A stretch of DNA of 64,000 bases from Macrostomum lignano (GCA_002269645.1 NIVC01002902.1:1-64000); one strand, 5' to 3'. Positions 1 to 43,750 are shown, counted from the stretch's first letter. Notes: generated by a model not told the origin, from the letters alone. A program made the numbers and translations.

Positions 1-61
1 ACACAACATAAGCACAAAAACTCCCACGGGGTCAATAAACAAAAATTACTATCTTAGGAAG

Positions 62-535: not shown

Positions 536-544
536 ATGAGTCAT

Positions 545-645
545 GCATTCCATTCAGACCAAAACGCGAGACCAAAAACGCGAGAAGAAAATTTCGAAAA
601 ATAAAAAAGATAAAAATTGGTCTCGTGTTTGGTCTGAATGGATGC
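545..645. repeat. Imperfect inverted repeat of about 30 bp (stem-loop)
   Basis: 545-575 GCATTCCATTCAGACCAAAACGCGAGACCAA pairs with 617-645 TTGGTCTCGTGTTTGGTCTGAATGGATGC across an A-rich spacer. Confidence 0.8.
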
Positions 646-2799: not shown

Positions 2800-2840
2800 A
2801 AAGCACCGTTCCATCACCCAGTTGTGAAGGAGTTTCAAAG

Positions 2841-4616: not shown

Positions 4617-4637
4617 ACGAAGATGTTATCAATGCGA

Positions 4638-6973
4638 TTACATTGGCTGATGAGGAATAGATCTGATAGGATCCAAATAATATCTTTTATCATCTAACGG
4701 ACTCATTGTTTGTTTCATAATCTCACGAATATATATTTTATTTTTTCAGATACAGTCATACTTACTCTACCTCTTTGAATATCTTTGTAATCTGTCAATA
4801 GTATGTTTTTAAATGTTTCAAACTTTATATTTGTACTGCTTTTATCAACCCCCTTGATCGTAACACACTCCCCTGAAACTGTAGTGAAAGCATACTCCTT
4901 TGACCGCAGGAATACAGCTTCGGAAATTATTGAGCCATTCATTTCATCTTTCAACTTTCCAATGACTTTCTTGTTCGTCTCGGAGTATAGTGGATGCTCT
5001 CTTGGATAATCCGATGTGTCTAAGTGTTCTTTAATTTTTTCAAGATCCTCATAAACATCCTGAGTAATCACTGAGAATATCAGCGAATCACAATCAGAAT
5101 AGTGCAATTGACAGCTGTTCCAATTCTTCTCAATAACATTGTAATAGCAATCGTACATGAACATTTTTGCATAATCCAGAATAGCCATTCCTAAATAAAT
5201 TGGCTTGTCACACGCAATTGTCTTTTTGTACATTTGGATACCAACCGCATCCTCACTAAACATAATGAAATCTTTGAAATTTGGTTTGGAAAAATAACGC
5301 CTTGCAGTTTTTTCTTCAGCTACAAGATGAAAGTTCGACCTATTCTTTACATTTTCGATTGTTTTACCGTAGAATGAGTTGTTTAGTAGTTTCCACAGGT
5401 CTTTCTCAAATTTAGTTTTTGCTTCCATTCTCCGCCTGGTATTAAATTCGATGTATTTACTCAACCAGTTTGACTCTTTGAATGAAAGAATTCTATAAAC
5501 TCTCGCAACTCGCATGCCCATCTTCTCATAAAACTCAAGTAGTCTGTGATGTAAAACATATTTCTCCTTGTTGTAAAATGTCAACATCAACTTGGATTGA
5601 ACAAACTTTTTCTTTTCGACTTCGAGGTATTGCTTCTGTATGTCAGATAAATCCTCAAACCTAGTTGTTCGTTTCTCAGGAGCCAGTGGATATTTACTTG
5701 TAGCTTTCTTACATTCCTCTGTATATTGAAGGTCAACTTCAAGAAAACAACCCCTGCCATTAGGAATATTCTTGTGATACTCTAGATCATTTTCAAACTT
5801 GAAATCTCCCACAGGTAGATTTTTCATCATTGCTTCACCATATAAATTATTCTTGTCCAAGTATAGCATGTACGACGATTCAGAATTGCTGTCATAACTT
5901 TCTAAATACTTGTTATTCATTTTTTTATATCGATCTCCAAGAACTCCAGAGAAACCGCCGCGAATACCACTTTCTACCATGGATATCATTTCTTTATCAC
6001 CAAGTAATTCCAATTCCACATTAGTATATTTCAACCCACATGCCCACGATAATCCAGAAAGGGAAAAGCAATACGCAGGATCTATCTTGAAATATTTCAA
6101 AAATGTTGATCGAAACTTCTCAAAAGCATTGACAAATGAGTAAATCTTTCTAATTACTGCTGTTGTATCACTGGGTGGCAAATATTTTATTTCTTCTTTA
6201 GAGAGTGTAAATGGTGGTTCCAAAAACCTAGATCCATCTAAAAACACAACACCACTGGTATAATTCCCCAACTTAATTGCAACATGGTCTTCCGATGTTT
6301 TAGAAATAAAATCCAATATATATTTTTTATTATTCATTCGTGTTAATGGAGCTATCAAATAGTTTAGATCTTTTCCAGATTCATTCAGGAGAAACAACGG
6401 TACTGTTTGATTCGCCTTGCCCTCTTTGGTATTACATGATTGACATGCTGCGCCGCGATATTTACCATTGTAGTGATTATGCTCTCGAATTTTTTTACTA
6501 TCTACAAATGGCCTTGAGCAGAGAAAACATTGTTCTGCCGCTTTGTAATCAGTCTCTTCGACATCACTTAATCTTGGATGTTTATATCTATCCATTTCAT
6601 TTTTTATATGCTTAAACTTTTTTATTACGGTTTCAACGAATGATTCCACTGTAGTATTTGAAATAATATTTGATTTTATAATGTCCTCATAGTCGGAACT
6701 AGTAAAAAGTGTCCATTGTGATAGCTCTAGTGATTTATCATCCATCGTTACATAATCTAATATTGCATAAAACACAAATGGTTTTCTTACACTCATGTGG
6801 TAGTTTTTAAACTTTAATATCCTCTTATCAATCTTTGGAACTTCAATTGACACTTTGAAGTCATTACATATTGCTTTATGATTATCCAGTGCATCCTGGG
6901 AGTATTTGACTTGAAGACACTTTCGACAAAGAAAAACCCTGTTGTAATTTTGGGACGTGAGGAATAAACACAA
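4638..6973 (-). CDS. Protein-primed family B DNA polymerase (pPolB2-like) with HNH/endonuclease VII insert, main body and C-terminus
   Basis: Motif A YLDKNNLYGEAM, motif B KLLNNSFYGK, motif C YSDCDS; EndoVII-like CFLC...EHNHYNGKYRGAACQSCN. The ORF stops at 4715, but the conserved tail KQTMSPLDDKRYYLDPIRSIPH continues in the -1 frame to a stop at 4640-4638. Confidence 0.9.
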
Positions 6974-6981
6974 GTCTGTTA

Positions 6982-7713
6982 TTAAACAATAATGATTTTT
7001 GACAAGTACGCTCGTAGTAAATCAATAACATTGGGGTTGTCGTAATCTTCTGTCAGACGAATAGAATATATTGACTCTTTAGTATTTATATCCCTTAATC
7101 CAAACACATTTATATGAAGACTGTTCAACTTTTCAATGTCAGAGATATCTCGAATGTCCACTGGAAATTTAACGTCTCCTAAGTTTATTTCATTTATATA
7201 CTGTGTATACTTCCCAACTCTATATCTATGTTCCTTCACAGGATGGAGCTTTGCTAAAATAGACCAGAGAAAGCACCTATTGTCTTTAGTGTTCTTGACA
7301 TTTACTAATGCGTTTGATTTAATTGGAATTGAAATATAAGTTCCTCCTTTCAACTGATTAATGCCAACAACTTTCAACACAATCTTTACTAACTTAACAA
7401 AATAATATCCCGATCCCCTTTCATTAAAACTATCCTTCCATTCATCAAATTCATCCAGAACATCCCTTATTGTACTTTCAATACTATCTTCAACTTGAAG
7501 CAGATTTAACAAAGTTCGATACTTTGAATGATATTGGAACTCAATCCAACTGTCGGTAGTTCCTTTATAAAATTCTGCGACAAAGGAAATTCTGTATTTT
7601 ATTGAATCTCTAGCCATCAAATGTTTAGAAAGAATTGGGGAGATCAAACCGTGAATTTCTTCAACGGTGTCGAGATCATATTCATAAGAGGCCGCTGGTA
7701 TTTTCCTTTCCAT
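6982..7713 (-). CDS. N-terminal part of the same pPolB
   Basis: ERGSGY...GGTYISIP...NVKNTKDNRCFLWSILAKLHP...FPV...INVFG, typical of this PolB family. Joins the main ORF through KNHYCLITDL by a -1 shift at an A run near 6998. Confidence 0.85.
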   Translation of the reverse strand: MERKIPAASYEYDLDTVEEIHGLISPILSKHLMARDSIKYRISFVAEFYKGTTDSWIEFQYHSKYRTLLNLLQVEDSIESTIRDVLDEFDEWKDSFNERGSGYYFVKLVKIVLKVVGINQLKGGTYISIPIKSNALVNVKNTKDNRCFLWSILAKLHPVKEHRYRVGKYTQYINEINLGDVKFPVDIRDISDIEKLNSLHINVFGLRDINTKESIYSIRLTEDYDNPNVIDLLRAYLSKIIIV

Positions 7714-7738
7714 TTTTAAGAAAAAAAATTAAACAGAC

Positions 7739-8509
7739 TCAAGCATAGGGGGGTGCAGTTGGAGCATTTGATTGAAGATTGAGTGTTGCCGAGTACTCTT
7801 TTGGCTTATCGGCTAGACCCAATTTTTCTCTCAGATCTTTCTCCAGCAGTTCCTTTTTAATTTTTTCCTTCGCTGAATGACCAAGTCTACTCTCTTTGAG
7901 AATTTTATCAACGACTTCCGAATGGTTAACTTCTTCAGGCGCAACACCGGCGTCTAACAATTGATCTCTTTTCTCTCTGTATTCTGAATAAATTGCAGTA
8001 GCTGCTTGAACCTCTTCAAGAGTTAATCTATAATCATCAACTGCTTTTTGGGAGTAAATATATAATCTCTCTCTGTATTTATTGGCCAGATCTCTGAGAA
8101 CAATGTATTTTGCCTTCTGCTTTTGGCAATGAATTTTCACAGTTGCAAACAACGACGTGGATTTTACAGCTTCAAAACCACTCATTGCCCCGATTACTAC
8201 TCCAATAACTAAGGGATTCAATGTCAGTATCGATGTTGCTATGCCAATTCCTGTAGCAGCCAAGAGACTTACATTTCCTGTCACAATGTTGATCCAATTT
8301 ATCCTGCTACTTTGTCGTTTGTACTTTTTTACCTTTTTGCTATAAATTGTAAGATCTTTCGTAATGCATTCAATACTGCCTTTGATTTCACCCTTTCTCT
8401 GATTGAAATAGTCCCGCTCCCTAAAATCTGCTTCATGCAGCTCAACCACAGGATAGATGTGTTCATTTTTATCATTCATTTTTATATGGCGATTATGCCT
8501 AATTGTCAA
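7739..8509 (-). CDS. Viral membrane protein (coiled coil - hydrophobic hairpin - coiled coil) with C-terminal PTAP motif
   Basis: Hydrophobic stretch IVTGNVSLLAATGIGIATSILTLNPLVIGVVIGAMSG; ends NAPTAPPYA*. Likely start is ATG 8479 (MNDKNEHIYP). Confidence 0.75.
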   Translation of the reverse strand: MTIRHNRHIKMNDKNEHIYPVVELHEADFRERDYFNQRKGEIKGSIECITKDLTIYSKKVKKYKRQSSRINWINIVTGNVSLLAATGIGIATSILTLNPLVIGVVIGAMSGFEAVKSTSLFATVKIHCQKQKAKYIVLRDLANKYRERLYIYSQKAVDDYRLTLEEVQAATAIYSEYREKRDQLLDAGVAPEEVNHSEVVDKILKESRLGHSAKEKIKKELLEKDLREKLGLADKPKEYSATLNLQSNAPTAPPYA

Positions 8510-8995
8510 TTATGTCTATACCTGACTGAATATCTAAAGCATTTCCTAGAAATAATGGTTTACTGAAGGCCATTTTATATATATAAAATTTACTATCGTT
8601 GAATTGGATGACACTTTCATATTGTATATACCTGAAATTGCATTAAATTGACCCGTGAATCCAACTTTTCTCATGGTTTTAGAGCTGGAATCGTGAAAAT
8701 TGCACTTTTTTAAAAAAATAGAAAATCACAAAAAATCGCTGTTTTCAGACCATTTTCACCTGTTTTTAGTCATTTTTCAGTTATTTTTAGTGATTTTCAA
8801 AATGAGTGAGGGCATGAGGGCGAGGGCACCCCCCCTTTTTAAAAGTATAAAAATCCGGAAATTCTGTCTTCTGAGAAATATACCACAGGCCAATGCCCCC
8901 CACATGCCCTCACCCTCAACACCCTCAGTCACAGATATATGTATATTTATATATTTTTATATTTATCACACCCCACTTGAACCCATGACCTCCTG

Positions 8996-9099
8996 GTAGT
9001 AGTAGTATGTTATAAGGGGTTGAGTCATCCAGCGAGCTGGCGCGCAATGCGCCCGAGCAATAAGTGTGGCGCAACCCCTTATAACATACTACTACTACT
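8996..9099. repeat. Terminal 27-bp perfect inverted repeat with (AGT)n/(ACT)n ends
   Basis: 8996-9022 GTAGTAGTAGTATGTTATAAGGGGTTG is the exact reverse complement of 9072-9098. Confidence 0.92.
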
Positions 9100-10859
9100 G
9101 AGCTGCCAGCGGGAGGCCGAGAGGCTTCGAGCCGCCGCTGCGTGGAAGAAATCCAGGCCCGCTTTGCTGACTTGTCTGTGAGTAACCAATACCTCTCAAC
9201 AGCATCAGCCGGTGTTTCGCCATCCTTGTTCTTCAAGCTGAACATTTCGGCTCCGATTTGGTCAAAAATGAACTGAAGAGAGTCGACTGGCTGATGCTCA
9301 GCGGCCAAATGGACGGCCGTGTCACCGTCTTTGTCAGGAACTGTGAGACAGTCGCTGCCGAGCTCCTTCACCAGCCACTTCAGCATTGAATTGTCAGACT
9401 TCTCAGCAGCAAAGTGAAATGCTGTTCTATCCAACAATCCCTTCAGCCGAAAGCAGTCAGTTCCGATCTGTCTCTTGATCCACTCCAGCGACTCGATGCC
9501 CTGATGCTTAGCGGCCAAATGGACGGCCGTGTCACCGCCGTTGTCAGGAACTGTGAGACAGTCGCTGCCGAGCTCCTTTACCAGCCACTTCAAATTTGAA
9601 CTGTCAGACTTCTTAGCAGCAATGTGAAATGCTGTTCAATCCCTCCATCCCTTCAGCCGAAAGCAGTCAGTTCCGATCTGTCTCTTGATCCACTCCAACG
9701 ACTCGATGCCCTGATGCTGAGCGGCCCAATGGACGGCCGTGTCACTGAGTTTGTCAGGAACTGTGAGACAGTCGCTGCCGACCTCCATTACCAGCCACTT
9801 CAGATTTGAATTGTCAGACTTCTTAGCAGCAATGTGAAATGCTGTTCTATCCTTCCACCCTCCCTTCAGCCGAAAGCAGTCAGTTCCGATCTGTCTCTTG
9901 ATCCACTCCAGCGACTCGATGCCCTGATGCTGAGCGGCCAAATGGACGGCCGTGTCACCGAGACTGTCAGGAACTGTGAGACAGTCGCTGCCGAGCTCCT
10001 TCACCAGCCACTTCAGATTTGAATTGTCAGACTTATGAGCAGCAAAGTGAAATGCTGTTCTATCCCTAAATCCCTTCAGCCGAAAGCAGTCAGTTCCGAT
10101 CTGTCTCTTGATCCACTTCAGCGACTCGATGCCCTGATGCTGAGCGGCAAAATGGACGGCCGTGTCACTGAGTTTGTCAGGAACTGTGAGACAGTCGCTG
10201 CCGAGCTCCTTCACCAGCCACTTCAGATTTGAATTGTCAGACTTCTCAGCAGCAAAGTGAAATGCTGTTCTTTCCAACAATCCTCCCTTCAGCCGAAAGC
10301 AGTCAGTTCCGATCTGTCTCTTGATCCACTCCAGCGACTCGATGCCCTGATGCTGAGCGGCAAAATGGACGGCCGTGCCACCGAGTTTGTCAGGAACTGT
10401 GAGACAGTCGCTGCCGAGCTCCTTCACCAGCCACTTCAGACAAGAGTTGCTTTTTCTGTTCACTGCGGCAAAGTGAGCGACTGTCTTTCCATACTTATTG
10501 GACATTCCCAAGCAGCTCCTGCCTCCCTTCTCTTTAATCAGCTCCATCCAAGACTCGTCCTGATGCTTGGCAGCCAAGTGCACTGGAGTCTCACCATCAT
10601 CCCTATAATTTCCAATTGTCAGACAGTCGGGTCCGAATCTGTCAATCAGCAGCTCCAGGCACGACGAACTCACCGGCTTGCAGGTCACGTGATGGGCCAG
10701 CGGCATTTTGCGAAGCTCTTCAAGGGGAAAGTCTTGCTTGTCGAACCCGCCCACCTCCAGCTCAATGTTGCTGCCGACCTCACCGCACAGTCGCTGCAGC
10801 TCCTCGCTGTCTCCAGCCTCCAGCGCCGCTCTCAGCTTCTGCTCTATCTGTGTTGCCAT
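9100..10859 (-). pseudogene. Ankyrin-repeat gene with tandem two-repeat units, one in-frame stop, 3'-truncated by the viral terminus
   Basis: ORFs 9636-10859 and 8925-9593 are in the same frame, separated by TGA at 9638-9636 where other units have AGA (Arg). TAxHxAA repeats lie in near-identical 207-210 nt units. Homology to the paralog at 25.6 kb stops at about 9098. Confidence 0.85.
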
Positions 10860-13499: not shown

Positions 13500-14840
13500 T
13501 TGCCTCCATCTGCTAATTGCCCTGCTCGCACCCTGCTCTCTCCACCGCGCCGCGCTCTGTCGTCCGACATGAACCTTGCCGCCTGGGAGCCGCTGCTTCT
13601 GGGTGACCAAGACGAAGATTTTCTTCGCAGCGGCCTTAGCTACGGCTTTCGGCTCATCAATAGATCGCCGCCTTTTCTTGCCCGCTCCGCCAACTACCGT
13701 TCGGCCTTGGACCAAGCCAAGCAGGTTGGTGAACAGCTCGCCGAGGAGCTCCGTCTCGGCCGCTTGCAGCTCGCCAATGGCCCTGTCATGGTGAACGCCA
13801 TCGGGGCGATTCCAAAGTCTGACGGCAGTGTCCGGGTCATTCATGACCTTTCTAGACCTTCGGGGTCCTCCGTCAACGACAGCTATGAGCAGGAAAAGGG
13901 GCTGCGCTTCGCCTCTGTCCAAGACCTGACCCGCTATCTTCGCCCAAACTCGTTTATCGGCAAAATCGACCTCAAGCAGGCCTATCGTTCCGTCGGTATT
14001 CACCCTGACGACCAGGTGCTCACGGGCCTCAGCTGGCGGTTCTCTGCCGACAGCGATGACTCGGTGCTCGTTGACACTCGGTTGCCCTTTGGTGCTCGAG
14101 CGTCATGTGAGATTTTCCATCGCTTATCGGCCTGCATCAAGCGCCACATGTTCAGCATTGGCTTCACAGCTACCGTCAACTACTTGGACGACTGGGCAGT
14201 CGCCGGTGATACTGAAGAAGCGGCTCAGGAGGCCTTCAATTATCTGGTTGATCTGCTGCAGAACTTAGGCTTCGACATCAACTGGCAGAAGACCGTGGCT
14301 CCAGCTCAACACGTTGTGTTTCTCGGCGTGCTGGTTGACACTGTGAACGGCACCCTGTCACTTCCAAGCAACAAGAAAGACGACATTCGGAAACTGCTGA
14401 ACGATTGCCTGTCACGTGACGTTGTTAAACTGAAGCAGCTCGAAAAACTGGCCGGTAAGTTGTGCTGGCTCAGCCAGATCAACAGGCTGTTGCGTCCTTT
14501 CCTGCGCCCGCTCTTCGACATCCTCAGCTGCAGAATGGACACCCGGCTGCCATCTGAGCTTCGCAACCTCTTCCTCTGGTGGCTGCGCGTCGTGAGTTCT
14601 CTGCCGCCGACGGTCATTCGCCCCGTTTTCGTCAACTTGTGGCCATCGAATCTGATAGCAGTTGCGAGGGTGCTGCTGGCATCGTCTTTGGCAGCGAATT
14701 CAGTGACTGGACGTACTTCAGCTGGGAGAAGGACTTTGAGAGCAAGTTCCGCGACCTTCACATCAACCACAAAGAGGCGCTGGCTCCGCTGCTTACCATC
14801 CTGCGCTTCCGCGAGCAGCTTAGGAACAGCCGCGTGGTGA
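13500..14840 (+). CDS. Reverse transcriptase (DIRS/Ngaro type)
   Basis: VRVIHDLS, KIDLKQAYRSV, LPFGARAS, YLDD, FLGVLVDT. Confidence 0.93.
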   Translation: MPPSANCPARTLLSPPRRALSSDMNLAAWEPLLLGDQDEDFLRSGLSYGFRLINRSPPFLARSANYRSALDQAKQVGEQLAEELRLGRLQLANGPVMVNAIGAIPKSDGSVRVIHDLSRPSGSSVNDSYEQEKGLRFASVQDLTRYLRPNSFIGKIDLKQAYRSVGIHPDDQVLTGLSWRFSADSDDSVLVDTRLPFGARASCEIFHRLSACIKRHMFSIGFTATVNYLDDWAVAGDTEEAAQEAFNYLVDLLQNLGFDINWQKTVAPAQHVVFLGVLVDTVNGTLSLPSNKKDDIRKLLNDCLSRDVVKLKQLEKLAGKLCWLSQINRLLRPFLRPLFDILSCRMDTRLPSELRNLFLWWLRVVSSLPPTVIRPVFVNLWPSNLIAVARVLLASSLAANSVTGRTSAGRRTLRASSATFTSTTKRRWLRCLPSCASASSLGTAAW

Positions 14841-25552: not shown

Positions 25553-26600
25553 TCACCCAGCTGAGGCGGCAGTCGGCGCTGATCTGCCAGCGGGAGGCCG
25601 AGAGGCTTCGAGCCGCCGCTGCGTGGAGGAAATCCAGGCCCGCTTTGCTGACCGGTCTGTGACAAACAGCCGACTCTCAACAGCATCAGCCGGTGTTTCG
25701 CCATCCTTGTTCTTCAAGCTGAACATTTCGGCTCCGATTTGGTCAAAAATGAACTGAAGAGAGTCGACTGGCTGATGCTGAGCGGCCAAATGGACGGCCG
25801 TGTCACCGAATAAATTTTCAGGAACTGTGGGACAGTCGCTGCCGAGCTCCTTCACCAGCCACTTCAGATTTGAATTGTCAGACTTCTGAGCAGTAAAGTG
25901 AAATGCTGTTATATCCAAAAATCCCTTCAGCCGAAAGCAGTCAGTTCCGATCTGTCTCTTGATCCACTCCAGCGACTCGATGCCCTGATGCTGAGCAGCA
26001 AAATGGACGGCCGTGTCACCGTATTTGTCAGAAACTGTTAGACAGTCGCTGCCGAGCTCCTTCACCAGCCACTTCAGACAAGAGTTGTTTTTTTGTTCAT
26101 AGCGGCAAAGTGAGCGACTGACTGTTCCCATCTACTGAAAATTCTCAAGCAGCCTCTGCCTCCCTTCTCTTTAACTCCCTAGCTTCATCCATGACTCGTC
26201 CTGATGCTGGGCAGCCAAGTGCACTGGAGTCTCGCCCCTCTCATTTCCATGTGTCAGACAGTCGGTTCCGAATCTGTCAATCAGCGACTCCAGGCACGAC
26301 GAGCTCACCGGCTTGCAGGCATGAGCATTCTCGGGCGCCATGAAGTGCCAGGTGCCTTTTGGCTGGTTGCCTGCGCTCAGACTGCAGGTTTTGACGGGTT
26401 CACCAACGTCGCCTCATCATTTCTCACCGAGTCTCCTCAGGCAGTCCGACCGCAGTCGGCCCATGCGGCTGGACGCTCTGTCGAGCTTGTGGGCGGGGAC
26501 GCGGAGCTGCAGCGCTGTAGGAAGAGTTTTACGAGTGAGCCCGTTAAACATGTCTGGGTCGCCAAGGCGGCACTTAAACTCTGCTAATGCTTCGTGTATA
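25553..26600 (-). pseudogene. Paralog of the 9.1-10.9 kb ankyrin gene, shorter array, frameshifted
   Basis: High nucleotide identity to 9100-9450 and 10430-10690; different N-terminal segment; probable splice donor GTGAGT near 25557. Confidence 0.75.
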
Positions 26601-26887: not shown

Positions 26888-27646
26888 TTGACAACAACGG
26901 GCTACAAGCAGGTTGGCTTCTCCCCTTCCGTGCCTCCTGAGCACGTCTCCGAGGAGTCCTTGACTTCGCTGTCCGAGGGTGATGGACACTGCCTTAAGTC
27001 CATAGAGGAAGGCTGTACATGTCAGATACAATTAGTAATGCTTGCACCTGCAACCAATGCTCCGCTCCAGACTGTCTCACAGCTGGTCATTCAAGGTGAC
27101 TTTGACTAGGTGCAGCGGCTGGCAACGAGTCAGCCCGTGACGACAACCGACCAAGCCAACCGGACCGTTCTCATGCTAGCAGCCGACTCGCCAAGTATTC
27201 CAGCTCAGGCTGAAAAGTGCATTTTGTACTTAATTAAACTTGGCGCCGATCCCAAAGCGATTGACGAGTCGGGCGACACGGCTGCGCATTTGGCAGCCCG
27301 ACAGGACAACGTGCGGCTTCTGGCGCTGATGCCTTTCAATGCTAAGTGGCTGCAGAACAGCCAAGGCCTGACACCGCTGATGGAGGCGGCTCAAACCGGA
27401 AGCTGGAGCTGCGCCAAGCACCTGCTGCATCTGCTGCGGCAGTGGAGTCACATTGAGTGGACAGAGACCGACAAGAAGGAAGCTGGGAGTTCGGACTCGC
27501 CTAAGCAGAATGGCGGCAAAGGACCCGAGAAGCCGAAGAACGAACGAAAACGCCTGCTTGGCCTGAAGGACCTCAACGGTCTGATAGCTGTAGAAATTGC
27601 GACGCGCAATGGGCATGAAGAGCTGGCTGGGTACATTGAGAGGTGA
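26888..27646 (+). pseudogene. Ankyrin-repeat exon with in-frame TAG (27107-27109)
   Basis: ORFs 26888-27109 and 27110-27646 share a frame; repeats RTVLMLAA, DTAAHLAA, LTPLMEAA; ends at donor AG|GTGAGT near 27642. Confidence 0.65.
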
Positions 27647-28838: not shown

Positions 28839-31800
28839 TCAAATCAAATGTTGATACCTTGAAAGAATTCTCAGCTCCACTTCATCAGCGTCGTCACGTT
28901 GAGAGATTTCCTTGAGCCAGTTAACAGCTTGGAAGTCGCCTGGTGTCAGTTCCAGTCGCAGGCACTGCAACAGGGCCTCAAAGTTCATATAGTAAAAGTT
29001 CTCAAAGTTTTCCATCGGCAACGGGAAGCATTCAGAAATGAAGTCGTAAAAATCACTTTTCACTCGAAACTGAAATTTATGTCGCTGTCCGAATTTGAAG
29101 CAAAACTTCCACGCCGAATCCTGGGTTTCTAAATGCCTCCACACGATGCTTTCAGTTGCCTCAGCAGCTGGCCTGTCACTGGGCCATGCAAGACAATGGC
29201 AAACCTGGTGAGCTCGGCAGTCCGTCAGAAACTCCACGGCGGTGCTCAGGTCGTCAAACATAAGGCAGCTCAAAGCTTTGAGACTCTCCCGGGCTGATCG
29301 AGCGCAATATGGCAACCTTTCTAACTGCTCAAACAGAGTAGCATGAGCCTCGCCACCTTCATAGTTAACTTCAAAGAGACTAAGTAAAGATTCCCTTACT
29401 AAATTATACACTTTATGATACGCAGGCTCGTTCGACTTTTGATCCGGGTTCCACAAAAGAATAGGTAGTATGAGGAACGGATGAAAGTAAAACATGCCTT
29501 CAGCACTGACGGGTTTCAGATATTCATTGAAGCTCATCAGCCGCTGGGGCAAGTGGTCGATCACGTCTCGAAGAACTTGCACGATCTCTTCAGAACTGCT
29601 GCGATCGGCACCCTTCAGATACAAAGCTGCATCGCTCAAGAAGAAATGCTCCATTATTCGGCCATCTGTATTGTCAGCGGAACGACTCGTCTCGACACTG
29701 TCCAACAGCATCTGCACCGATCGACGGATGAGTGTCATAAGGTTCTCCGGCTTCCACTGCTCTTCTGGTGTCTCTTCAAGCATTCGGAACGTGACCGTCT
29801 TTGCGTGATACGCCTTCAGACCGTGAACTCTGCGACCGATCACCTTCTTGACCAGAAACTTGAGCGTGATGAACAGCTCGCCCTGCAGATTCGTGAGACT
29901 CCGTAGCAGGCGTCTCTCTAAGAAGGTGGTGCTCACTCGGAGCTGCTTGCCGGCTTGTCCAGGAGGTGCCGCGTGAACCACGTGACAGGGCAAGGCTTCG
30001 AGCTCGCTTGTGAGAGACTGCAGCACCGTTTGTGGGATGCTGGATTTGGCCAGTCGATGAGGCTGCAGCGGCCCGATTGGAGGATAGCAGCAGAGGCGAC
30101 AGGCGCTCACGCGGTCCACAGCGGGTCGGAGAGTCGAACCGTTCTCTGGCCGGGCTGGGTTTGACGCTAAAGTTGGGAAGCAGAATTACGAGTATAATAT
30201 AAAGTCCTTTCTAGATGACCAAAATACTAAATTTAAGCTCATAATCATTGAACCCTCACCAAATCCTTCACATTCTATATGCCCGTTGTAGTAACTTGTT
30301 GTTTGTCGACTGTTAGCATTCGGGCATTGGCAGAAGCGTCTCACATGATACAATCGGCCAGGCATTAGCTGAACTACGTCAATGTCGGATTCAAAATCAG
30401 TTCTACCGTCCATACGTGTTAGACTGTTGCCCCAGCCCTCGGAGTAGCTTCCCACTACGAAGACCTCATTGTCATTCAGTCGGTTTCTTAGAATTGTTTC
30501 CAGTACGTCGGCCATTGCACTCTGCATTGCGGCTCTGGTTTCGGAAAATCCCGACTTGGTTAGTGCTGCGTGTAGCTGCAGACTGAGTTCTGTGTCTTCG
30601 GGTTGTGGTCTGAAGTTTAGTCAAGTTAGACATTTCTCCTTAGTATTCTTCTTGTACATGTGATAAAAATTACAGCTCAAATACCTGTTTCATAAAATGG
30701 AACAAAACTTACCCATACTTAGTAAGGTTTTCAAACTGTTCAAAACGTTTACTAGATAAGTTCGCTTCTGGCTGAAGAACAGGTGGAATATCAGTACTGT
30801 CTTTTATTACTTCAGAGTCTGCAGCGCAATAATCGAAATTTTCTTGAGCCCTTCTGAGTCGTCTAGCTACAGGCAGATGGTTTTGAGCGAGGGACAACTC
30901 CAAAGGCGTCTTTCCATCAAGTGCGTGTGGCCTGACCGTGCATCTGGCTTCAAGCAGCAGCTCAACTACTCGATCATGACCTGACTTTGCGGCAATGTGC
31001 AGCGGCGACTTGCCACTCTTGGTTCGAATATCGGAATTTGCTTTAGAGCTCAGAAGCAAGTTGGTAATGTCAGTGTGACCCTGTTGGCTAGATATCAAAA
31101 GAGGCGAATATCCCTCTCCGACTTCTTGAAGATCTACTTCGGCTTGGCCTGTCAGGAGGGAAGACACAACTCCTACGTGACCCCAGTGCACTGCCAAGTG
31201 GAGCGGCGACTGTCCAGTATCCCTCTGGACGTCGACATTGGCCTGGGCTCCGATAAGCAAGTCAACAGTTTCCTGGTGGTTCTCTTGCGCTGCAATGTGC
31301 AAATGTGCTAGAGAAAATTTCCAGAGGACATTCACATCTGCTTGCGACTTTATCAGAGCTTTGACGACTTCGCTATGGCCAAACTGTGCGGCCATGTATA
31401 AAGGCGAGAAGCCTCTTTCGTCTTGCAGTTCAACATCGGCCTCTGCCTTCAATAACTCATTGACAACTTTTTCGTGTCCTTTTTGGCAGGCAATGTATAA
31501 AGGTGACTGACCGGTAAGCACTCGTGTATTAATGTTTGCTTGTGCTTTTATGAGTGTCTTAACAGATTCTTGGAGACCATCTTGCGAGGCAATGTAGAGT
31601 GGTGTTGCCTGCTCCACAACTCCGAGATTTAGGTCAGCTTGAGCCGTAATAAGCAAATTAAGCACGTTGATGTGATTTTCTTGCGTTGCCATGTAAGCGG
31701 CAGTAGCTCCTGACCGAGATCGAAAATTTACATCGGCGTGAGCTGAAACCAATGCTTGCAATAACTTGCAATCGCCATGCTTTGAGACTAAATGGATTGG

Positions 31801-33015
31801 AGCGAACCCCTGATCGTCCAGAATATCTAGATTTGAGCGTGCTCTAATTAGGAGGCTGCTCAATTCGCAAGAGGCTCTGTCTAGCGCAGCATGAAGAGCA
31901 GTTTCTCCTGATAATCCTGGAGTATTCGGATCTGCTTGCGAATCGATAAGAAGCTCAATAATGTGACGGCTTTCAGCTTGAGTGGCAAGAATGAGAGGTG
32001 TCATTGACTGTTCAGTCCGACAATCCAAGTTTGCCATTGCCTTAATTAATATCTGTACCACCTGTCTATGACCATTCACGGTTGCTGCATGCAAAGGTGA
32101 TTTTTGGTCACAAGTTTGTGCGTCCGGATCAGCTTGCGCGTTGAGCAGAAAGGTCAAAAGTTTTTGATTGCCCTTTTCTGCCGAAATGAAAAGCGCGGAC
32201 CTACCATTTCGAGTCTGTAAATTGACGTCAGCTTGCGCTAGTACAAGTGCTTTGGCTATGTGATACTGACCAGCTTTTGCCGCAATAAAGAGCGCTGTTG
32301 TCTCGTCTTTAGAGAGAAGATCGACATCAGCTTGAGCTGCAATCAGCATCTGAAGCACTTTCAAATAACCCTCTTGTGACGCCATGAAAATCGGTGACCA
32401 GCCCTCGTCGTCAGGCAAATTCACATCTGCATGTGCGTCCAGCAGCTGTCTGACAATTCCACGGTGATTGAACTGTACAGCAGCAAGCAGGGGTGTCTCA
32501 CCAGACTCTGTTTGCAGGTTCACATCGACACCGGCCTTGATTAATTTCCTAACGAATTCGACTGAGCCATCCTGGCAGGCGATGTACAGCGGCGAACAAC
32601 CGTTGCTTTGTCTGAGATTCAAGTCGGCTTGAGACCGAGCCAGATGGTACACAACATCGGGCCAATTGTCTTGAGCGGCAATGTGCATCGGGCTCGCCCC
32701 TTGAAACTGCTGGATATCCAAATCGGCCTGAGCCCTGATTAGCAGATCCACCACTTTGAGGTGGCCATTCTGCACCGCAAAGAATAACGGCGATTCGTTC
32801 CTGCTTGTCAACAAGTTGACATCCGCCTGCGCTTTGATGAGCCTGTCAACGACTGCGTAGCGACCGAGATAGCAGGCTAGGTGCAGTGGAGTTGTACGGC
32901 CTGAGCAATATCTGATCTCCTCATTTAGCTCTATTAGCTTCTGTGAAAGGTGCTTATCAACTATCTGCAAATTCTCCGTCTTGATTGCGTCCAGAAATTC
33001 TTTTTTACCTTGCAT
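28839..33015 (-). CDS. Ankyrin-repeat (about 21) - Mab-21/cGAS-like nucleotidyltransferase fusion (cGLR-like), 1326 aa, copy A
   Basis: Exons 33015-30713, 30609-30260 and 30166-28839; GT-AG introns of 103 nt (phase 2) and 93 nt (phase 1) join three track ORFs in frame (3981 nt). NTase motif GSYSEG...SDIDV, third Asp in AVDRVSA, Mab-21 helices LRVSTTFLERRLL and LKAYHAKTVTF. Confidence 0.9.
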
Positions 33016-33436
33016 GTCAGCGTTTTTTGCAAATTATTAGCAAAGTAAGACCCTCTTTGAGAATTGCGATGGCTAAAGAGCTGTAGACAGTAAGCGAGCC
33101 ATGATAGTCTATTTGTACTGCATCGCTGCAAGTAATGCACTGGACTAGTTGAATTTTTAAAAAGCGCTCTGGTAAATGCACACGAATGCCAGTAGTTTTT
33201 TTTCTCCCTGCAATTTCTGTCTTTTTGGCGTACACTTCTGTACGCAGAAACGCGAGTGGCCTAAGATAGAGAGAAAAATGTACGGCGGGAGTACCTTGTT
33301 CGCGGCATTATAATTATGAAGCACTAATAGTACCATTATTTCAGGCTTAGCTCTGGAGGCCACACTTCTTTCATAGATGCTTGGCGCAGATCAAGTTGAG
33401 GAATTTAGAAGCAAATTTTAAGAAAAGGCAAACAAT
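33016..33436. promoter_or_regulatory. Putative bidirectional promoter between the two ANK-cGLR genes
   Basis: 421 bp separate two divergent ATGs. Position-based inference only. Confidence 0.55.
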
Positions 33437-36400
33437 ATGGAGATTGAGTACGAGTATCTCCAGGCCGTACTATCAGGAAATCTAGTAGTTGTCGATGCCT
33501 TTATAACTGCTGGAGTTCCCGTGGACAAAATGTTCTACATCGGCAACAACTCTGGAGCCGCCCTTCATTTGGCCTCGTCAACTGGTCAAGTTGCAGTGGT
33601 CGACCGGCTTCTGAGAGCTCAAGCCGATATCAATCGACGTCAAGAAGCCGGCGCCACGCCGCTGTTCCTGGCCGCCGAGTTTGGGCACGCGAACGTCGCC
33701 AAGCTGCTGCTTCAAAACGGTGCAAATGCCGACCTGCCGCGCTGGGACTCAGGCGACGCGCCGCTGCATATCGCATGCGACAAGGGCCACACGGCGGTAG
33801 TAGATCGACTCATTGCCGCTGGAGCCGACCTCAATCCTGTACAGGAGGCAGGCTGCACCCCCATCTACATGGCAGCGCAAAATGGCCACTCCAAGATTGT
33901 CGCTCGGCTGCTCAGAGCCGGAGTCGACCTTGACTGGCGTTGTCTAACCAACGGGAATTCTGCTCTGCTCGCAGCCACTCAGGAAGGTCACGCTCGCGTT
34001 GTCGCTAGCCTTATTCAAGCGGCAGCCAACGTGAATCTTACTAACAAAAAAGGTGAAACAGCGTTGCACTTTGCTGCTCAAAATGGACAACTCAAGATTA
34101 CTCAGCTACTTCTCAAGAGCCGCGCCGATGCCAACGTCAAAGCAAGCAACGGCTGCGAACCGATTCACACCGCGGCTCAGAACGGAAATCTGGCAATAGT
34201 GCAAGCCCTGATCGCAGCCCAGGCGGACGTCAACACTGTCGAGGTGGATGGTGCGTCTCCAGTTTACATCGCCTCACAGAATGGCCATCAAAGAGTTATC
34301 AAAACTCTGATTGAATCGCAGGCTAACATTGATCATCAGCGCAATGACGGCGTGTCAACGATTTACATTGCCGCTCAAGAGGGTCACAGCGAAGTGGCCA
34401 GGCTGCTAGTGCGCTCTGGAGCAGCAAAAGTGGATGCACAAACTAGGACAGGAGAGACTCCACTGCACATTACTGCTCAGCGAGGCGACCAAGCGACTCT
34501 ATACGAGCTTCTTCAAGCAGCTCAAGGCAGTCCAGTGAATTCGAAGCAGAACGATGGTTGCTCGCCGATTTTTCTGGCAGCGCAGTTCGGTCATTGGAAA
34601 GCCATTGAGCGTCTTATTCACGCTGGTGCCGATGTCAACACGACAAGAGCGACTACAGGACAGACACCTCTGCACGCCGCAGCTGAGAATGGACATCCAG
34701 AAGCGACTAAATCGCTGGTCCGATGCTTTGCTGATGTCACTGCAACAGACAGGGATGGCCAGACACCTTTAAACTTGGCTAGAAAATTTAAGCACAAAAC
34801 AGTTGCTGAACTTCTTGAGAAGGCCCTATCTGACAGGGATAATTCAGAAGATGCTGGGACTGTGAAAGACGAGCCGATGCCGTCACAAGTTGATAAAAGC
34901 AGCTCCAGCTTGAGGTAATATAACTTCAATAAAGCCGCACAGTAAATATCCTTTACTCTGAAAATTCACATTAAGTTTCACTTTCAATTTCTCGTACGTA
35001 TTTCAGCGAAGAAGAATTCAGTCAGCAACTGCACAGTTCCCTCCAGCAGGCTGGCTTTGAGCAGACCCGAGCTGCCCTTCAGAGCTCGTGTGCAGACGTC
35101 CTGCAGCGCATACTAAGACAACGCCTACGCAGCGAAGAAGTTTTTGTTGTTGGCAGCTACTCGGAAGGCTGGGGAAACAGCCTCAGCCATTTGGATGGCA
35201 GAACGGACCCAGAATCCGACATAGACGTGATGCAGCTCATACCAGGAAGGATTTATCACCTGAAAGATGTCTGCAGGTGCACTGATCCTGACTCTGAACT
35301 AGTTGTGGAATATGACAACGGTCATATAATCTGTAAAGGATATGGTAAGCATATTTTTATTTCTCTAATCTCGAAACTCTAAAGCTCGAAGTTATAATAG
35401 TCTTCAGTAATTTACCAACCTCAATCAGCTTCCAGCCCAGCCCGGCCAGAGAACGGTTCGACTCTCCGACCCGCCGTGGACCGCGTGAGCGCCTGTCGCC
35501 TCTGCTGCTATCCTCCAATCGGGCCGCTGCAGCCTCATCGACTGGCCAAATCCAGCATCCCACAACCGGTGCTACAGTCTCTCACAAGCGAGCTCGAAGC
35601 CTTGCCCTGTCACGTGGTTCACGCGGCACCTCCTGGACAAGCCGGCAAGCAGCTCCGAGTGAGCACCACCTTCTTAGAGAGACGCCTGCTACGGAGTCTC
35701 ACGAATCTGCAGGGCGAGCTGTTCATCACGCTCAAGTTTCTGGTCAAGAAGGTGATCGGTCGCAGAGTTCACGGTCTGAAGGCGTATCACGCAAAGACGG
35801 TCACGTTCCGAATGCTTGAAGAGACACCAGAAGAGCAGTGGAAGCCGGAGAACCTTATGACACTCATCCGTCGATCGGTGCAGATGCTGTTGGACAGTGT
35901 CGAGACGAGTCGTTCCGCTGACAATACAGATGGCCGAATAATGGAGCATTTCTTCTTGAGCGATGCAGCTTTGTATCTGAAGGGTGCCGATCGCAGCAGT
36001 TTTGAAGAGATCGTGCAAGTTCTTCGAGACGTGATCGACCACTTGCCCCAGCTTCTGATGAGCTTCAAAAACAGCCTGTACCAAATTGGGTCAAACAATT
36101 TGTTTCATTTTCACCCATTTCTTATTCTCCCAGAGATCGATCCAAAGTTTTCAACAGGGCTGCACTTCCGCGATTATTACAGCATCTATGACATCGTAAG
36201 AGATTCGTTTGAATCTCTGGTCGTGCCTGACTTTAGCCGTGAATTCGAAGCCTCCCTGGTGAAGAAGATTGGCAGGTTGCCAGACTGTGCTAGATCAGCT
36301 CGCGAGAGCCTCAGGGCCCTGGTCTGCCTGAAATTTAACGATACAGTTGCCGCCTCTGATGTTTTGTTGGACTGCAACGGTCACATAGTAAGCAGAGGCA

Positions 36401-36864
36401 TTAAGGAATTTGCTTCTAGACCCGCAGAAGGGTCAGGGGAGTCGGCAGTATTCAACCAGCTATGCAACAGCGACCTAGCCTGGAGATTCAGCTTCATGTT
36501 CCTAAACCGGCCGGATCTATCCAGCCTCTTACCGGATCATCTGGCCACCTGGTTTCCCCTGCGAATGGAGAACTACGACGCGTACTACTATATAAGCTTT
36601 GATTGCCTGCTGCTTTGTCTGAGTTGCGAGCTGCGAGTCAAAAGCGCCGAGGCTCAGAACGCTTGGCTTCTGGGTTTGCTTCTGCGCGACGAAGCAGACA
36701 TTCAGGAACTGCTCACTGCCATGCGATACTGCTCAGATCACAGTCTGGCTCTATCGGTGATTAGAAAATTTCAAACAAGCATTCAAAGCCACGAGCTAAC
36801 GTCTAAAGAACTGATAAGATTTCAACAGGAGCGTCTTCTAGCTGATTTACCACAGGCCTTCTAG
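33437..36864 (+). CDS. Ankyrin-repeat (about 13) - Mab-21/cGAS-like nucleotidyltransferase fusion (cGLR-like), 1083 aa, copy B
   Basis: Exons 33437-34914, 35007-35344 and 35429-36864; GT-AG introns of 92 nt (phase 2) and 84 nt (phase 1); 3252 nt in frame. Same GSYSEG...SDIDV and AVDRVSA motifs as copy A. Confidence 0.9.
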
Positions 36865-38787: not shown

Positions 38788-39071
<284 letters not shown>

Positions 39072-39292
39072 TACACGTATCTACATATAGTCAACAAGCT
39101 GTTGAAACCCGCGGATTTTGAACCCGGGGAATTTCAATCCCTGGAACTATTTTTGCATGTACTTGTATGTCGTATTCTAAAATCTGGGGTCAAACTCAAA
39201 CAAAAACTTGTTAATAGTTAGGTTAGAATTAAACATAAAATAGAGTACATTCGTGAAAAATTAGGATTTGAGGCAAACATTTATATTGTTGG

Positions 39293-40470
39293 CTGGGGTG
39301 CTGCGAACAGGCAAACTCTGGCCTCTGCCTCTCCTTATGTCCCTTGGATCCTTAGAAACTTCGATCTTCTCTTCTGTTTCCTCTCCTCTCTCTCGTCTCT
39401 GTCTCTTCTCTCTCTCCTCTATCCCCTATTCTCTCGTCTATTCCCTCTCCCCTCTATTCTTTTATCCCTCCTCTCCTCCCTCCTCTCTACTCTGTACTCT
39501 CTCCTCTCTCTCCTTCTCCTCTCATCTCTTCTCTTCTTTCCTCTCTCCTCTCTCCTCTCTTCTATCGTCTCTTCCCTCACCTCTCTTCTCTCTCGTCTTT
39601 GCTCTCTTATCTATCTCTTCTTTCTCTTATTTTATCTTTTCTCTCTTCTCTCTTCTCATTCTTTCTGCATGTTCTCTCCTCTCTCTTTCCCTCTCTCTCT
39701 CCTCTCTCTCTCCCTCTCTCTCCTCTCATCTCTCTGCTCTCTCCTGTCCCATCTCTCTTTCTCCTCTAATCTCTCCCCTGTTTCCTCTACTCTCTCGTCC
39801 TTTCTCCTCTTTCCCCTGTCCTCTCGGTTCTCTCCCCTCCCCTCCTCTCTCCTCACTCACTTCTCTCTCCCTTGTCTCCCCTCTCATCTCTTATTTCTAT
39901 CCTTTTTTCTCTCCACTCTCCTCCCATCTCTCGTCTGTTCACTCTCGTCTCTGGTCTCTCATCTCCCCTCTCTCATCTGCCATCTTTACTCTCTTATACT
40001 CGTATGTTTTCTCACCTCTCTCATCTGTACTCTTCTCTTTCCCCTCTTTTGACTCCTCTCTTTCCTTTCTCCTTTTTTCCTTCTCTTCTCTTCCCTCTTC
40101 TATTCTTTCCCTCTCTTGTCTTCTCTCTTCTCTCTTCACTCTCCTCTCTCCTCTCATATATCGCGTTCACTCTCATCTTTGCTCTCTACCCCCTCTCTCT
40201 TCTGTCATCTTTACTCTCCACTCTCCTGTGTACTCTTCTCTTTCCCCTCTACTGAATCCTCTCTTCTTACTCCTCTTCTCTTCCCTCTTCTATACTCTCT
40301 CCCCTCTATTCTCTTCTCTTGTCTCTGCACTCTGCTCTCTCTTCCTTCATCTCTCATCTCTACTCTCTCATCTTTCCTTTCATCTCTCTCATCTCCACAA
40401 TCTCATCTATTTCCTCTCTCCTCTTCTTCCCTTTACTCCATCATCTCTCCTTTCTCCTCTCTTCTTTCTC

Positions 40471-40568
<98 letters not shown>

Positions 40569-40954
40569 TCTTATCTCATCTCTTCTCACTCCTCTCTACC
40601 TCTCTCCCCTCCTATCTCCTCTCTGTTCTCTATTCTCTTCTCACTCTTCTCTACTCTCCTCTCTCATCGATCCTCTGTCTCATCTCTCCCCTCTTCTCTC
40701 TTCCTCTTCTCTCCTCTACTCTTTCCTCTCCCTCCTGTCTCCCCTCCTCTCGCTTCCTCCTCCCATATTCTCTGCTCTCTCCTCGTCCTCACCCCACTCG
40801 TCTCTCCTGTTATCTTATATATTTTCTCTTACCCCCCTCTCGCCCTTCCTCTCTTTCTAATAGTCTATTCCTTTTCTTTTTCACTCTCATCTGGCCCGCA
40901 GCCATGAGTTGGATTCTTTATCTGGCCTTTGAGTAAAAAATCTACCGATCCCTG
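39293..40954 (-). mobile_element. hAT-like MITE with a 1.5-kb internal CT-rich tract
   Basis: End 40893-40954 is homologous to the reverse complement of 62549-62610; the other end GGGGTGCTGCGAAC resembles GGGGTCTGCAAAC. Confidence 0.6.
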
Positions 40955-42124
40955 CTTCGAAAGCCAGTTTGTGGGACGGTACTATCATGGTTATCATTTC
41001 TCATGCTTTAATCACGTCACCTTTCTGGCCAATTAGCAGCCCTGAGAGGAATTTGTGTATCTCCAGCTCCACCACCCAGTCTGCACTCTGCAGCAGTCTA
41101 ACAACCAAGGAAATACGCATTTCTTAGGAGTCATTTAAATTTTAAAGTTACCCTATGCGAAACTTAATGTTAAAAGCTTCATGGTGTAACTAATTGAGTA
41201 GTATTGCATTGTAATAAGTTATTCATTAATTTTTCGCTATTTTTACAAACCATCCCGCATCGCCTTGATTTGCCTGTTTGCCATCTACTGTTAAACTGCT
41301 GCAGACTTGTGTCTATACAGAGGACAGTGGTTTGAATCTCTCACTGAAACTGTCTCTCCTCTCCACGCCTCTCCACTCGCGCGGGGGTGCAGAGAAGGCT
41401 ATTAAAAAGTTATTCCAAAACACTGTACATTCGCTATGTACATTGAGCTCTATCGCCTGACCCTTCGTCTGGCTCTGGGGGAATGAGTGAGTGAGTGGCA
41501 CAAACACATAAAAAGCAGACAAACTTCACATGCTTACAGTTTCTTTTTCGGTTGAGTTACAGAGTTGAAACTTTATATTTAGATAGAGAATGAGTCAATG
41601 AAGAATTGTGTCAAGTTTGAAGTCAATCGCTTTACGTGGAGCAAACTTATGGCAGCTGAAAGTTAGCCAATTTTGAAACCCTTTTACACATCTGGGCCCA
41701 GATCGGTATCGGGAAAGAGAGGCAGGCGGGCGGAGGTTGGGGTGGTTGCTACGCTGAAAAAAACAGCCTAACTTTAAAAGTGCACAGCACCGCTCAGGAT
41801 TAACTTTGAGACTCGAAATTTTACATGATTGTGCCAAAATAGTTTAAGATTATCTGTGTCAAATTTGAAGAGAATCGGTAAAAGTGGAACGGCGCTATGG
41901 AGGATTTAGTGAAAAAATCGCGCATTTTGAGCAGTTTTTTGTACTTTTAGGTAGGAAGACTTGAGTCTAGGAAATTTAAAGGTAGCCTAAGACATTCTCC
42001 GTAGTAAGTTTAGGGTGGGTATAAAGTTTGGTGTCATTTGGTTGAGCGGTTTGGGAGTCCATAGCGATCAAAATTGTCCACACACAGACAGACAGACAGA
42101 GTTTTGATTTTTATAGGTAGACGA

Positions 42125-43750
42125 GTGGAACTCCTCCTTCGGAGGAGAAAGGGGAAGAACTCCCATCACCGGAATTCCATTCCCTGAATTATCCATCAAC
42201 TGAAATTCCATGTCTTGAATCCCATCTTCCAAATCGTCTCCAAATTCTTTACAAACCTTTTAAAGACCATAGCTCAAAGACTCTCACGTCTCTCATATCT
42301 CCTCTCTCTTCTATTCGCTATTATCGTGACTCTCTTCTCTCTCCTCTCTCTCATCTCATCTCTACCCCTACTCCCTTATTTATCTCTTCTCCCTCGTCTT
42401 TCGTTTGTACCCTCTCCTGTCTCTTGTCTCCTCTCTTCTCTCATATCTCTCCCTCTTCTCTCCTCTCTCATATGTCATCTCTCCTTACTTATCTATCGTC
42501 TCTCTTAACCCTCTCTCTCTTCTCTTTTCTCTCCTATCTGCTTCTCATTTCTCATATCTCATATACACTCTACTTTCTTGTCTCCCATCTTTCTTTCCTC
42601 CTTACCACTATCCCCTGTCTCTTCTCTTCTCTCTTTTCTATCCTCTCCATTCTCTCTTCTCTCCTCTCCTTTCTCCTTTCATCTTCTCCCCTCTCTTCTC
42701 TAATCTCTAATCTCTTCTCTCTTATGTTCTCGCTCATCTCTTTTCTCATCGCATCTCTCATCTCTCCTCTCCTCACTACTTTCCTTCTCTTAACTCTCTT
42801 ATCTCTGATCTTTCATTTCTTTCCTCTCTCCTCTCTCTCTTCTCCTCTCGCTTCTCTCTCTCCTCTCTCTCCTCTCATCTATACTACCTTATTTATATCT
42901 TCTCCCTGGTCTTTCGTCTCTACTCTCTCCTGTCTCATTTCTCCCCTCTTTTCTCCTCTCTTCTCTCTCCCCTCCTCTCTCATCTCTCATCCCTCATCTC
43001 ACTCCTTCTTTCTCCTCTACTCTCCCCTCTTTTATCCCCCTTCTCTTCTCTCCTCTCATCTCTCCTGTCTCCCTCTGCTATCTCATATCCCCTCTCTCAT
43101 TTCCTCTCTCCTCTTCTCTTCTTTCTCCCTTTTCATTCTCGCCTTACTCCCCTCTTCTCTCTCATCTCTAATCTCTCCTCTCTCATATCTAATCTCTTTT
43201 CTATCATCTCTATTCTCTTTTCTCTCTTCTCTGACTGAGTGAAGGTGCAAAGTCCATCGAAATCCTCTCCGTAAAACAGAAATACTTCTAAGTCCTCTTC
43301 GTTGAACAAAACTCCACCAAAAACCTCTTCATTGAACAGAACAGAACACAACACAATCAAAAGCCTCTCCGTGAAGCTGACAACCACTGAAGTCCTCTCC
43401 GTGAAACTGAAAACCATCGAAATCCTCTCAGTGAAACAGAAATCTATAAAATTTTTCTTTGGGAAACTGAAAGCCATCGAAATCGTCTCCGTGAAACAGA
43501 ACTTCATCAAATTCTTTTCATGAAACTGAATTCCATCAAAATCCTCTCCTTTCAACGTCAATCTATCAATATAATCTTCGTCAAGGTGCGATTAATCAAT
43601 TTTTAATCATAAAAATACCCGACATCTCCATGAAATTGCAGTCCATCAAAACTGCTCAATAGAGATCCAAAAGATGCTTTCCATACTTAAAAGTATTCAA
43701 GTTAAAGGCGTCAGTGGTTAGGGTTGGAGTTAGGGTTAGGGTTAGGGCTA
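42125..43750 (-). mobile_element. Second copy of the 11.4-kb repeat family: CT tract, 30-bp tandem repeat (43250-43540) and short (TTAGGG)n (43717-43748)
   Basis: Shared head sequence with 11379. The distal boundary is uncertain. Confidence 0.45.

Follow-up and report, generated by a model that had tools for sequence, protein, structure and literature searches.

Animal cGAS-like receptors (cGLRs) have been surveyed by Li et al. 2023 (PMC9980059), who covered about 3000 of them and in whose work the fusion of ankyrin repeats to a cGLR is a recognised architecture. Table S2 of that study includes PAA accessions from the flatworm Macrostomum lignano that contain Ank_2 domains and were classed as cGLRs, and five nucleotidyltransferase (NTase) constructs from the same species were screened there with poly I:C and double-stranded DNA (dsDNA; Table S3 entries 89-93). 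We have here analysed 64,000 nucleotides of M. lignano DNA (GCA_002269645.1, NIVC01002902.1:1-64000), in the following called the window, in which two genes, A and B, lie head to head and are predicted to encode fusions of an ankyrin array to a cGLR (ANK-cGLR). They are new members of an already catalogued family and architecture, not a new kind of system, and the locus yields complete gene models for two formerly unannotated or fragmentary members of that family.

Six open reading frames (ORFs) across positions 28839-36864 of the window assemble into two three-exon genes, with gene A on the minus strand and gene B on the plus strand (Table 1). This agreed with the original prediction, made from the same DNA, of two divergent genes built from six ORFs around a 421-bp spacer, and the distance holds when counted from ATG to ATG. 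All four introns are of the GT-AG type, all four are in phase 2 and they are 84-103 nt long. The introns had also been predicted to be identical in position and phase, which was borne out for the phases and for intron 2, falling at exactly the same codon in A and B (EGF/AS and KGY/AS), but not for intron 1, which lies in the linker between ankyrin repeats and NTase in both genes and in the same phase, though shifted by three codons where the alignment has gaps. In exon 2, conserved coding sequence extends up to the AG acceptor and no in-frame Met is found upstream of the GS motif, so that the NTase would be translatable only when fused to the upstream ankyrin exon. A paralog having ankyrin repeats and NTase in one uninterrupted ORF, which would prove the fusion without splicing, was not found among six loci, and many annotated M. 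lignano paralogs carry both parts within one gene model. As read from the sequence, A and B have the ANK-cGLR fusion architecture, joined by clean phase-2 splicing. Their ankyrin arrays comprise 21 repeats in A and 13 in B, a count based on the TPLH-type motif recurring every 33 residues (Pfam Ank_2 E-values of 7.5e-166 and 7.2e-92), which reproduces the numbers of divergent repeats given in the original prediction; the two arrays are 30-33 % identical, approximately the consensus level for ankyrin repeats. The sequence that gene A enters at its 3' end (28839-28900) is AT-rich and contains AATAAA/ATTAAA signals at 28792 and 28687.

The NTase of both proteins is, as judged by structural modelling, of the cGLR type with a complete GS / DxD / D active site. 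A and B both contain the motifs GSYSEGWG, SDIDV and PAVDRV, in agreement with the triad of GSYSEG, SDID and AVDRV that had been proposed for a Mab-21/cGAS-type domain, and the corresponding residues are listed in Table 1. Using a family profile searched against 1.84 billion cluster representatives (clusters at 50 % identity, with a family cut-off of E <= 1e-30), the glycine, the serine and the three acidic residues were found intact in 80 of the 87 family domains that cover all six columns (92 %), and 10 aligned paralogs show no variation at G53, S54, D75 and D77, with D134 being conserved in at least 90 % of them. An AlphaFold model of gene A exons 2-3, having a predicted local distance difference test score (pLDDT) of 84 and a predicted template modelling score (pTM) of 0.86, gave 37 Foldseek matches at E <= 0.001, all to cGAS, MAB21L1, MB21D2 or Sp-cGLR1 and all with probability 1.0. 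The best match was cGAS (4.7e-07, template modelling (TM) score of 0.58 normalised to the target), MiD51 was also among the fold matches of this model, and the comparison with cGAS and Mab-21 structures that the original prediction had suggested for these exons hence turned out in its favour. The GS motif in the model follows strand 1, D843 and D845 open strand 2 and D902 is found on a later strand (residues 132-141), a layout corresponding to the pol-beta arrangement. When run against the PDB, the family profile matched cGAS chains at 3e-05; a single-sequence PDB search with the C-terminal half of gene A gave nothing relevant, its best match being a dehydratase (E 0.035). All 10 aligned family members match Pfam Mab-21_C (best 7.6e-10). 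The family profile also reaches, at E ~1e-11 to 1e-14, proteins carrying Pfam Mab-21 together with Mab-21_C above the gathering score, a case of transitive sequence homology that assigns the family to the Mab-21/cGLR superfamily. Exon 2 is under purifying selection, the proportions of nonsynonymous (pN) and synonymous (pS) differences between A and B being 0.28 and 0.75 (pN/pS ~0.37).

Between the DxD and the third Asp we also observed a conserved H-x4-C-x-C-x14-H motif (residues 856-878 of A, window ~30347-30279; H88, C93, C95 and H110 in C-terminal numbering), which may form a zinc site placed differently from the Zn thumb of cGAS, as it lies in the N-lobe whereas the thumb of cGAS follows the third Asp. 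Beyond the Mab-21 domain, both proteins continue for a further stretch that is conserved across the family and measures 223 aa for A and 259 aa for B. An AlphaFold model of this C-terminal domain (pLDDT 81, pTM 0.82) has a mixed alpha/beta fold, for which a search against the PDB gave no significant match (best E 0.52, to the TRIF N-terminal domain, followed by TPR-like helical proteins). The last ~35-60 aa of the paralogs are missing from gene A, including the C-terminal helices that are found in gene B and other members, and the stop codon of gene A is not followed by any continuing reading frame. Both this domain and a gene conversion tract, described below, are features beyond those of the original prediction.

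At the family cut-off, the profile search gave 87 clusters at 50 % identity, a count that is inflated by fragmentary gene models. All strong profile matches with a source name came from M. lignano, as did 29/29 homologues in a word-indexed protein search, and these matches delineate a large expansion of the ANK-cGLR family that has so far been found only in M. lignano. It is mainly at this level that the locus is of interest, as part of a large cGLR expansion in which the members are typically ankyrin-fused and the active site is conserved. Among the weaker matches checked (E ~1e-11 to 1e-14), the sole source-named relative outside Macrostomum was P0123 (Mercenaria mercenaria XP_053407825.1), a Mab-21 protein of a bivalve that carries, as a fusion, a trypsin-like peptidase domain. 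With regard to gene structure within the family, intron 2 is kept in A, B and the loci L001, L003, L004, L005 and L009 and missing in L002, L006 and L007, where a single uninterrupted tblastn match was obtained, so that intron loss or gain must have occurred. In locus L008 (10001-18307; M. lignano NIVC01000031.1), the annotated model P0094 contains ankyrin repeats, a cGLR-like domain and a caspase domain (Peptidase_C14); the active site of its cGLR-like domain is degenerate, two of the three acidic positions being occupied by N and T. In L007 (869-6728) the paralog adjoins LRAT and Peptidase_C14 genes. These two observations hint at cell-death effectors linked to the family, or else at a merged gene model. 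Locus L003 (10001-29445; M. lignano NIVC01001606.1) holds a tandem duplication of ~13.9 kb that includes a whole ANK-cGLR gene, the two copies of which are fused into one 871-aa model in the public annotation, together with a minus-strand fragment containing the C-terminal part only (4784-5823).

A and B are anciently diverged paralogs with a recent gene conversion of ~630 bp in exon 3. The converted tract is seen as an inverted repeat of 642 nt that is 99 % identical between its arms and that extends, within exon 3, from a point shortly ahead of the third catalytic Asp across the Mab-21 C-lobe. Codon analysis of A versus B gave a pS of 0.02 inside the tract and of ~0.75, which is saturated, outside of it, with a pN outside the tract of 0.28 upstream and 0.42 downstream. 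Upstream of the tract, A and B are 59 % identical to each other as compared with 53-64 % to unlinked paralogs, and downstream the corresponding values are 40 % and 37-45 %. With pS being low inside the tract and saturated outside, and with the identity of A to B outside it being no higher than that to unlinked paralogs, the paralogs must therefore be old and the conversion recent; on these same two grounds, saturation outside the tract and the lack of any closer kinship, a recent inverted duplication was rejected. The locus illustrates clearly how old paralogs in inverted orientation can undergo gene conversion.

The same data bear on whether A and B could be pseudogenes, or whether the inverted repeat could have been created in assembly. 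Such a reading would fit with the missing C-terminal tail of gene A and with the fact that neither whole gene is found as a protein model in the databases searched, where the best full-length match was 55 %. It fits poorly with more than 1000 open codons in each gene, with canonical splice sites and with the pN/pS of exon 2. The repeat arms, moreover, are distinguished by a few differing sites and each is flanked by unique sequence, and a UniProt fragment from M. lignano, P0017, has the ankyrin array of gene B joined to the same tract (~97 % identity), being ~98 % identical to gene B within aligned blocks. As this independent gene model carries the tract, we rejected an assembly artefact as the source of the inverted repeat, and we regard the reading as a whole, pseudogenes included, as highly improbable.

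The original prediction had also taken A and B to be a co-regulated pair, possibly acting as a heteromer, by analogy with plant NLR pairs. Under that reading the two genes would be driven from one bidirectional promoter and their products would work as a heteromer or as sensor and helper, with gene conversion keeping the catalytic or dimerising cores compatible. The head-to-head layout with only 421 bp between the ATGs speaks in its favour, as does the finding that two deeply diverged paralogs have been kept adjacent, that their arrays, differing in sequence and in repeat number, would suit different ligand specificities, and that the conversion tract homogenises exactly the C-lobe core. Against it, however, every catalytic residue is kept in both proteins, so that no functional asymmetry of the sensor/helper kind is seen, A and B outside the converted tract resemble each other no more than they resemble unlinked paralogs, and conversion between nearby inverted paralogs is expected also without functional coupling. 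The original prediction had proposed a search for other ANK-Mab-21 pairs, and in a survey of nine other family loci with 10-kb flanks none had a complete head-to-head partner (0/9): eight of the nine held a single copy, and the ninth was L003 with its tandem duplicate and C-terminal fragment. Since no recurrent partner was found at these loci, genome organisation gives pairing or a heteromer no support, and we consider the paired reading improbable. Somewhat less probable still is its most specific form, in which a bidirectional promoter, different ankyrin specificities and a heterodimer held together by the converted C-lobe would make up a true functional pair, signalling to an undiscovered receptor. 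If it were true, the two proteins would together make a combinatorial sensor, and this in a phylum from which cGAS-STING is believed to have been lost.

With regard to function, we find it fairly probable that A and B are intact ANK-cGLR family members, each being predicted to act as a cytosolic pattern-recognition enzyme, a ligand-gated nucleotide-signal synthase. Each is a three-part protein made up of an N-terminal ankyrin solenoid, a divergent NTase of the cGAS/Mab-21 type and the family-specific alpha/beta domain at the C-terminus. The ankyrin repeats, the C-terminal domain or both may bind the ligand or hold the enzyme inactive, and ligand binding would then relieve the inactive state, whereupon the NTase would make a nucleotide second messenger. 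On this account, the head-to-head layout is most simply a side effect of duplication and rearrangement at close range as the family rapidly expands, and inverted neighbours would be prone to conversion. As for the ligand, Li et al. 2023 (PMC9980059) stress that numerous cGLRs are likely to depend on ligands not yet identified, and report that those sensing nucleic acids are more positively charged. The isoelectric points (pI) of the NTase domains were 7.45 for A and 6.42 for B, with acidic values of 5.8 and 6.0 for the whole proteins, and because these NTase domains are near neutral in charge the ligand is probably not free dsDNA or double-stranded RNA (dsRNA). The near-neutral pI in itself argues weakly for a ligand other than nucleic acid.

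Several observations weigh against the proposed synthase function. No family member has a known enzymatic activity, the Mab-21 NTase family PF03281 has no direct match to the A and B proteins, Mab-21_C (PF20266) scores 23.6-24.4 bits on them as compared with a gathering cut-off of 24.1, and the spacing from GS to DxD is ~9 residues longer in A and B than in cGAS or OAS. The five screened M. lignano constructs are not among the 15 labelled active in Table S3 (PMC9980059), where a blank activity label does not amount to proof of inactivity. Furthermore, cGAS and STING are reported as lost in Schistosoma (PMC4117786) and in Schmidtea (PMC13563047), neither of which is M. lignano, and from this loss in examined flatworms it follows that the canonical downstream receptor may be missing.

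Some of these observations would fit with a non-catalytic Mab-21 scaffold of the MAB21L1 or MiD49/51 type, in which the NTase fold binds a nucleotide or protein and the ankyrin repeats recruit partners. In its favour one can count MAB21L1 and MiD51 among the significant fold matches, the lack of an active label for the five screened paralogs and the reported absence of STING from other flatworms. We nevertheless hold it to be unlikely, as a GS motif and three acidic residues kept in 80/87 highly diverged domains are hard to explain without catalysis, and as MAB21L1, MiD49 and MiD51, in spite of their structural likeness, are according to Li et al. 2023 (PMC9980059) not predicted to have a functional active site, whereas A and B keep theirs. 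An active NTase could instead have a different chemistry and produce OAS-like linear 2'-5' oligonucleotides, RNA 3' tails or nucleotidylylated proteins rather than a cyclic dinucleotide signalling through STING. Weak sub-threshold Pfam matches of gene B to the poly(A)-polymerase palm and NTP_transf_2, the structures of terminal uridylyltransferases (TUTases) and OAS3 in the non-significant tail of the fold search, the unusually long GS-DxD loop and a possibly absent STING partner are all compatible with this. Yet every match that reached significance in the fold and profile searches was a cGAS, cGLR or Mab-21 protein and none was an OAS or TUTase, which makes a different chemistry rather unlikely.

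Flatworms are usually described as lacking cGAS-STING, yet M. lignano carries a very large cGLR expansion. This species is a tractable model with RNA interference and transgenesis, and the family is therefore well suited to a search for non-nucleic-acid cGLR ligands and for STING-independent signalling. We found no dedicated study of Macrostomum cGAS, STING or Mab-21 in the literature, and the accessible part of Table S5 of Li et al. 2023 (PMC9980059) has no entry for M. lignano.

Table 1. Features of the ANK-cGLR locus, in window coordinates.
Feature	Position	Strand	Size or basis
Gene A	33015..30713, 30609..30260, 30166..28839	minus	1326 aa
Gene A exon 1: start codon, N-terminal cap, 21 ankyrin repeats (residues 1-768)	30713..33015	minus	ORF, Pfam Ank_2, 33-aa periodicity, GT donor 30712
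Gene A exon 2: linker helix and NTase N-lobe	30260..30609	minus	splice sites, reading frame, motif positions, pol-beta topology of the model
Gene A exon 2 motifs: GS (G821/S822); D843; D845	30447-30452; 30384-30386; 30378-30380	minus	
Gene A exon 3: D902 (30114-30116), Mab-21 C-terminal helical lobe, C-terminal domain, stop	28839..30166	minus	Mab-21_C 24.4 bits, cGAS fold match
Gene A family-specific C-terminal domain	~29510-28842	minus	
Conversion tract, gene A arm (codons ~888-1097)	29527..30168		inverted repeat; pS 0.02 inside
Candidate shared 5' regulatory region: 421-bp spacer between divergent start codons	33016..33436		coordinates
Gene B	33437..34914, 35007..35344, 35429..36864	plus	1083 aa
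Gene B exon 1: start codon and 13 ankyrin repeats (residues 1-492)	33437..34914	plus	Pfam Ank_2 7.2e-92, repeat count, fragment P0017
Gene B exon 2: NTase N-lobe; G542/S543 (35152-35157), D564 (35218-35220), D566 (35224-35226)	35007..35344	plus	
Gene B exon 3: D623 (35479-35481), Mab-21 C-lobe, C-terminal domain, stop	35429..36864	plus	Mab-21_C 24.1 bits
Conversion tract, gene B arm (codons ~609-818)	35427..36068		inverted repeat; codon analysis
Gene B family-specific C-terminal domain	~36085-36861	plus	AlphaFold pLDDT 81, no PDB match

A tblastn search of the window with the NTase returned genes A and B only. The region is rich in ankyrin genes or fragments, with further ankyrin-repeat ORFs lacking an NTase partner at 8925-10859 (minus strand), 25553-26131 (minus) and 27110-27646 (plus). 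Positions 1-8500 form an AT-rich block (GC content 0.34-0.39) of closely packed long ORFs, especially at 2101-4616 (plus) and 4715-6973 (minus), that encode a primase-helicase-like protein (weak Prim-Pol, PriCT_2 at 1.3e-11 and D5_N at 7e-13) and an Endonuclease VII-domain protein, and the block looks like an integrated virus-like or mobile DNA element. A GC-rich stretch contains a retroelement remnant, namely a reverse transcriptase ORF at 13500-14840 (plus; RVT_1 at 6.6e-12 and a weak RVT_thumb). On the other side of the locus, a (TAGA)n microsatellite of ~71 copies is found at 38789-39071, followed by long CT-rich low-complexity arrays at 39381-43232. The strong negative GC skew at 40-44 kb is due to these arrays, as are two spurious long ORFs (39268-40860 and 42424-43242), which were discarded as artefacts.

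Among the systems with which the locus can be compared, the head-to-head plant NLR pairs, such as RGA4/RGA5 and RRS1/RPS4, are similar in having two related immune-type receptor genes that diverge from a short spacer. A and B differ from these in showing neither a sensor/helper asymmetry nor an integrated decoy, and in that the pairing does not recur among their paralogs. With regard to vertebrate cGAS, the segment between the DxD and the third Asp is 57 residues long in A and B as compared with ~92 in cGAS, the GS-DxD loop is longer, the sequence identity is ~15 %, no basic N-terminus accompanies the near-neutral pI, and an ankyrin array and an extra C-terminal domain have been added. The likeness to cGAS (PDB 6CT9, 4K97; Foldseek 4.7e-07 to 1e-06) lies in the bilobed pol-beta NTase with a Mab-21 helical C-lobe, and in the GS motif with two acidic residues on strand 2 and the third on a neighbouring strand.

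The ANK-cGLRs of the coral Stylophora pistillata and other animals (PMC9980059, Fig. 1C, 4C) are of the same architecture class as A and B, and Li et al. 2023 (PMC9980059) propose that the ankyrin repeats of such proteins mediate ligand or protein interaction. A and B differ from these in belonging to another cGLR clade and phylum, in having very long arrays (13-21 repeats) and in being part of a massive expansion in one flatworm. The M. lignano cGLRs of Li et al. 2023 (PMC9980059), such as PAA86972.1, PAA45980.1, PAA57558.1, PAA93208.1 and PAA68676.1 (entries 89-93) and the PAA entries with ankyrin repeats in Table S2, are of the same family as A and B. A and B are distinct paralogs of these, and neither their head-to-head layout nor the conversion tract appears in PMC9980059. 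The NTase region of gene A is 39 % identical to PAA86972.1 (Table S3 entry 89; E 1e-76), and the two proteins have in common the GS-x-x-E-G/A-W-G, D-x-D and FHPF(L)ILP motifs as well as the C-terminal extension.

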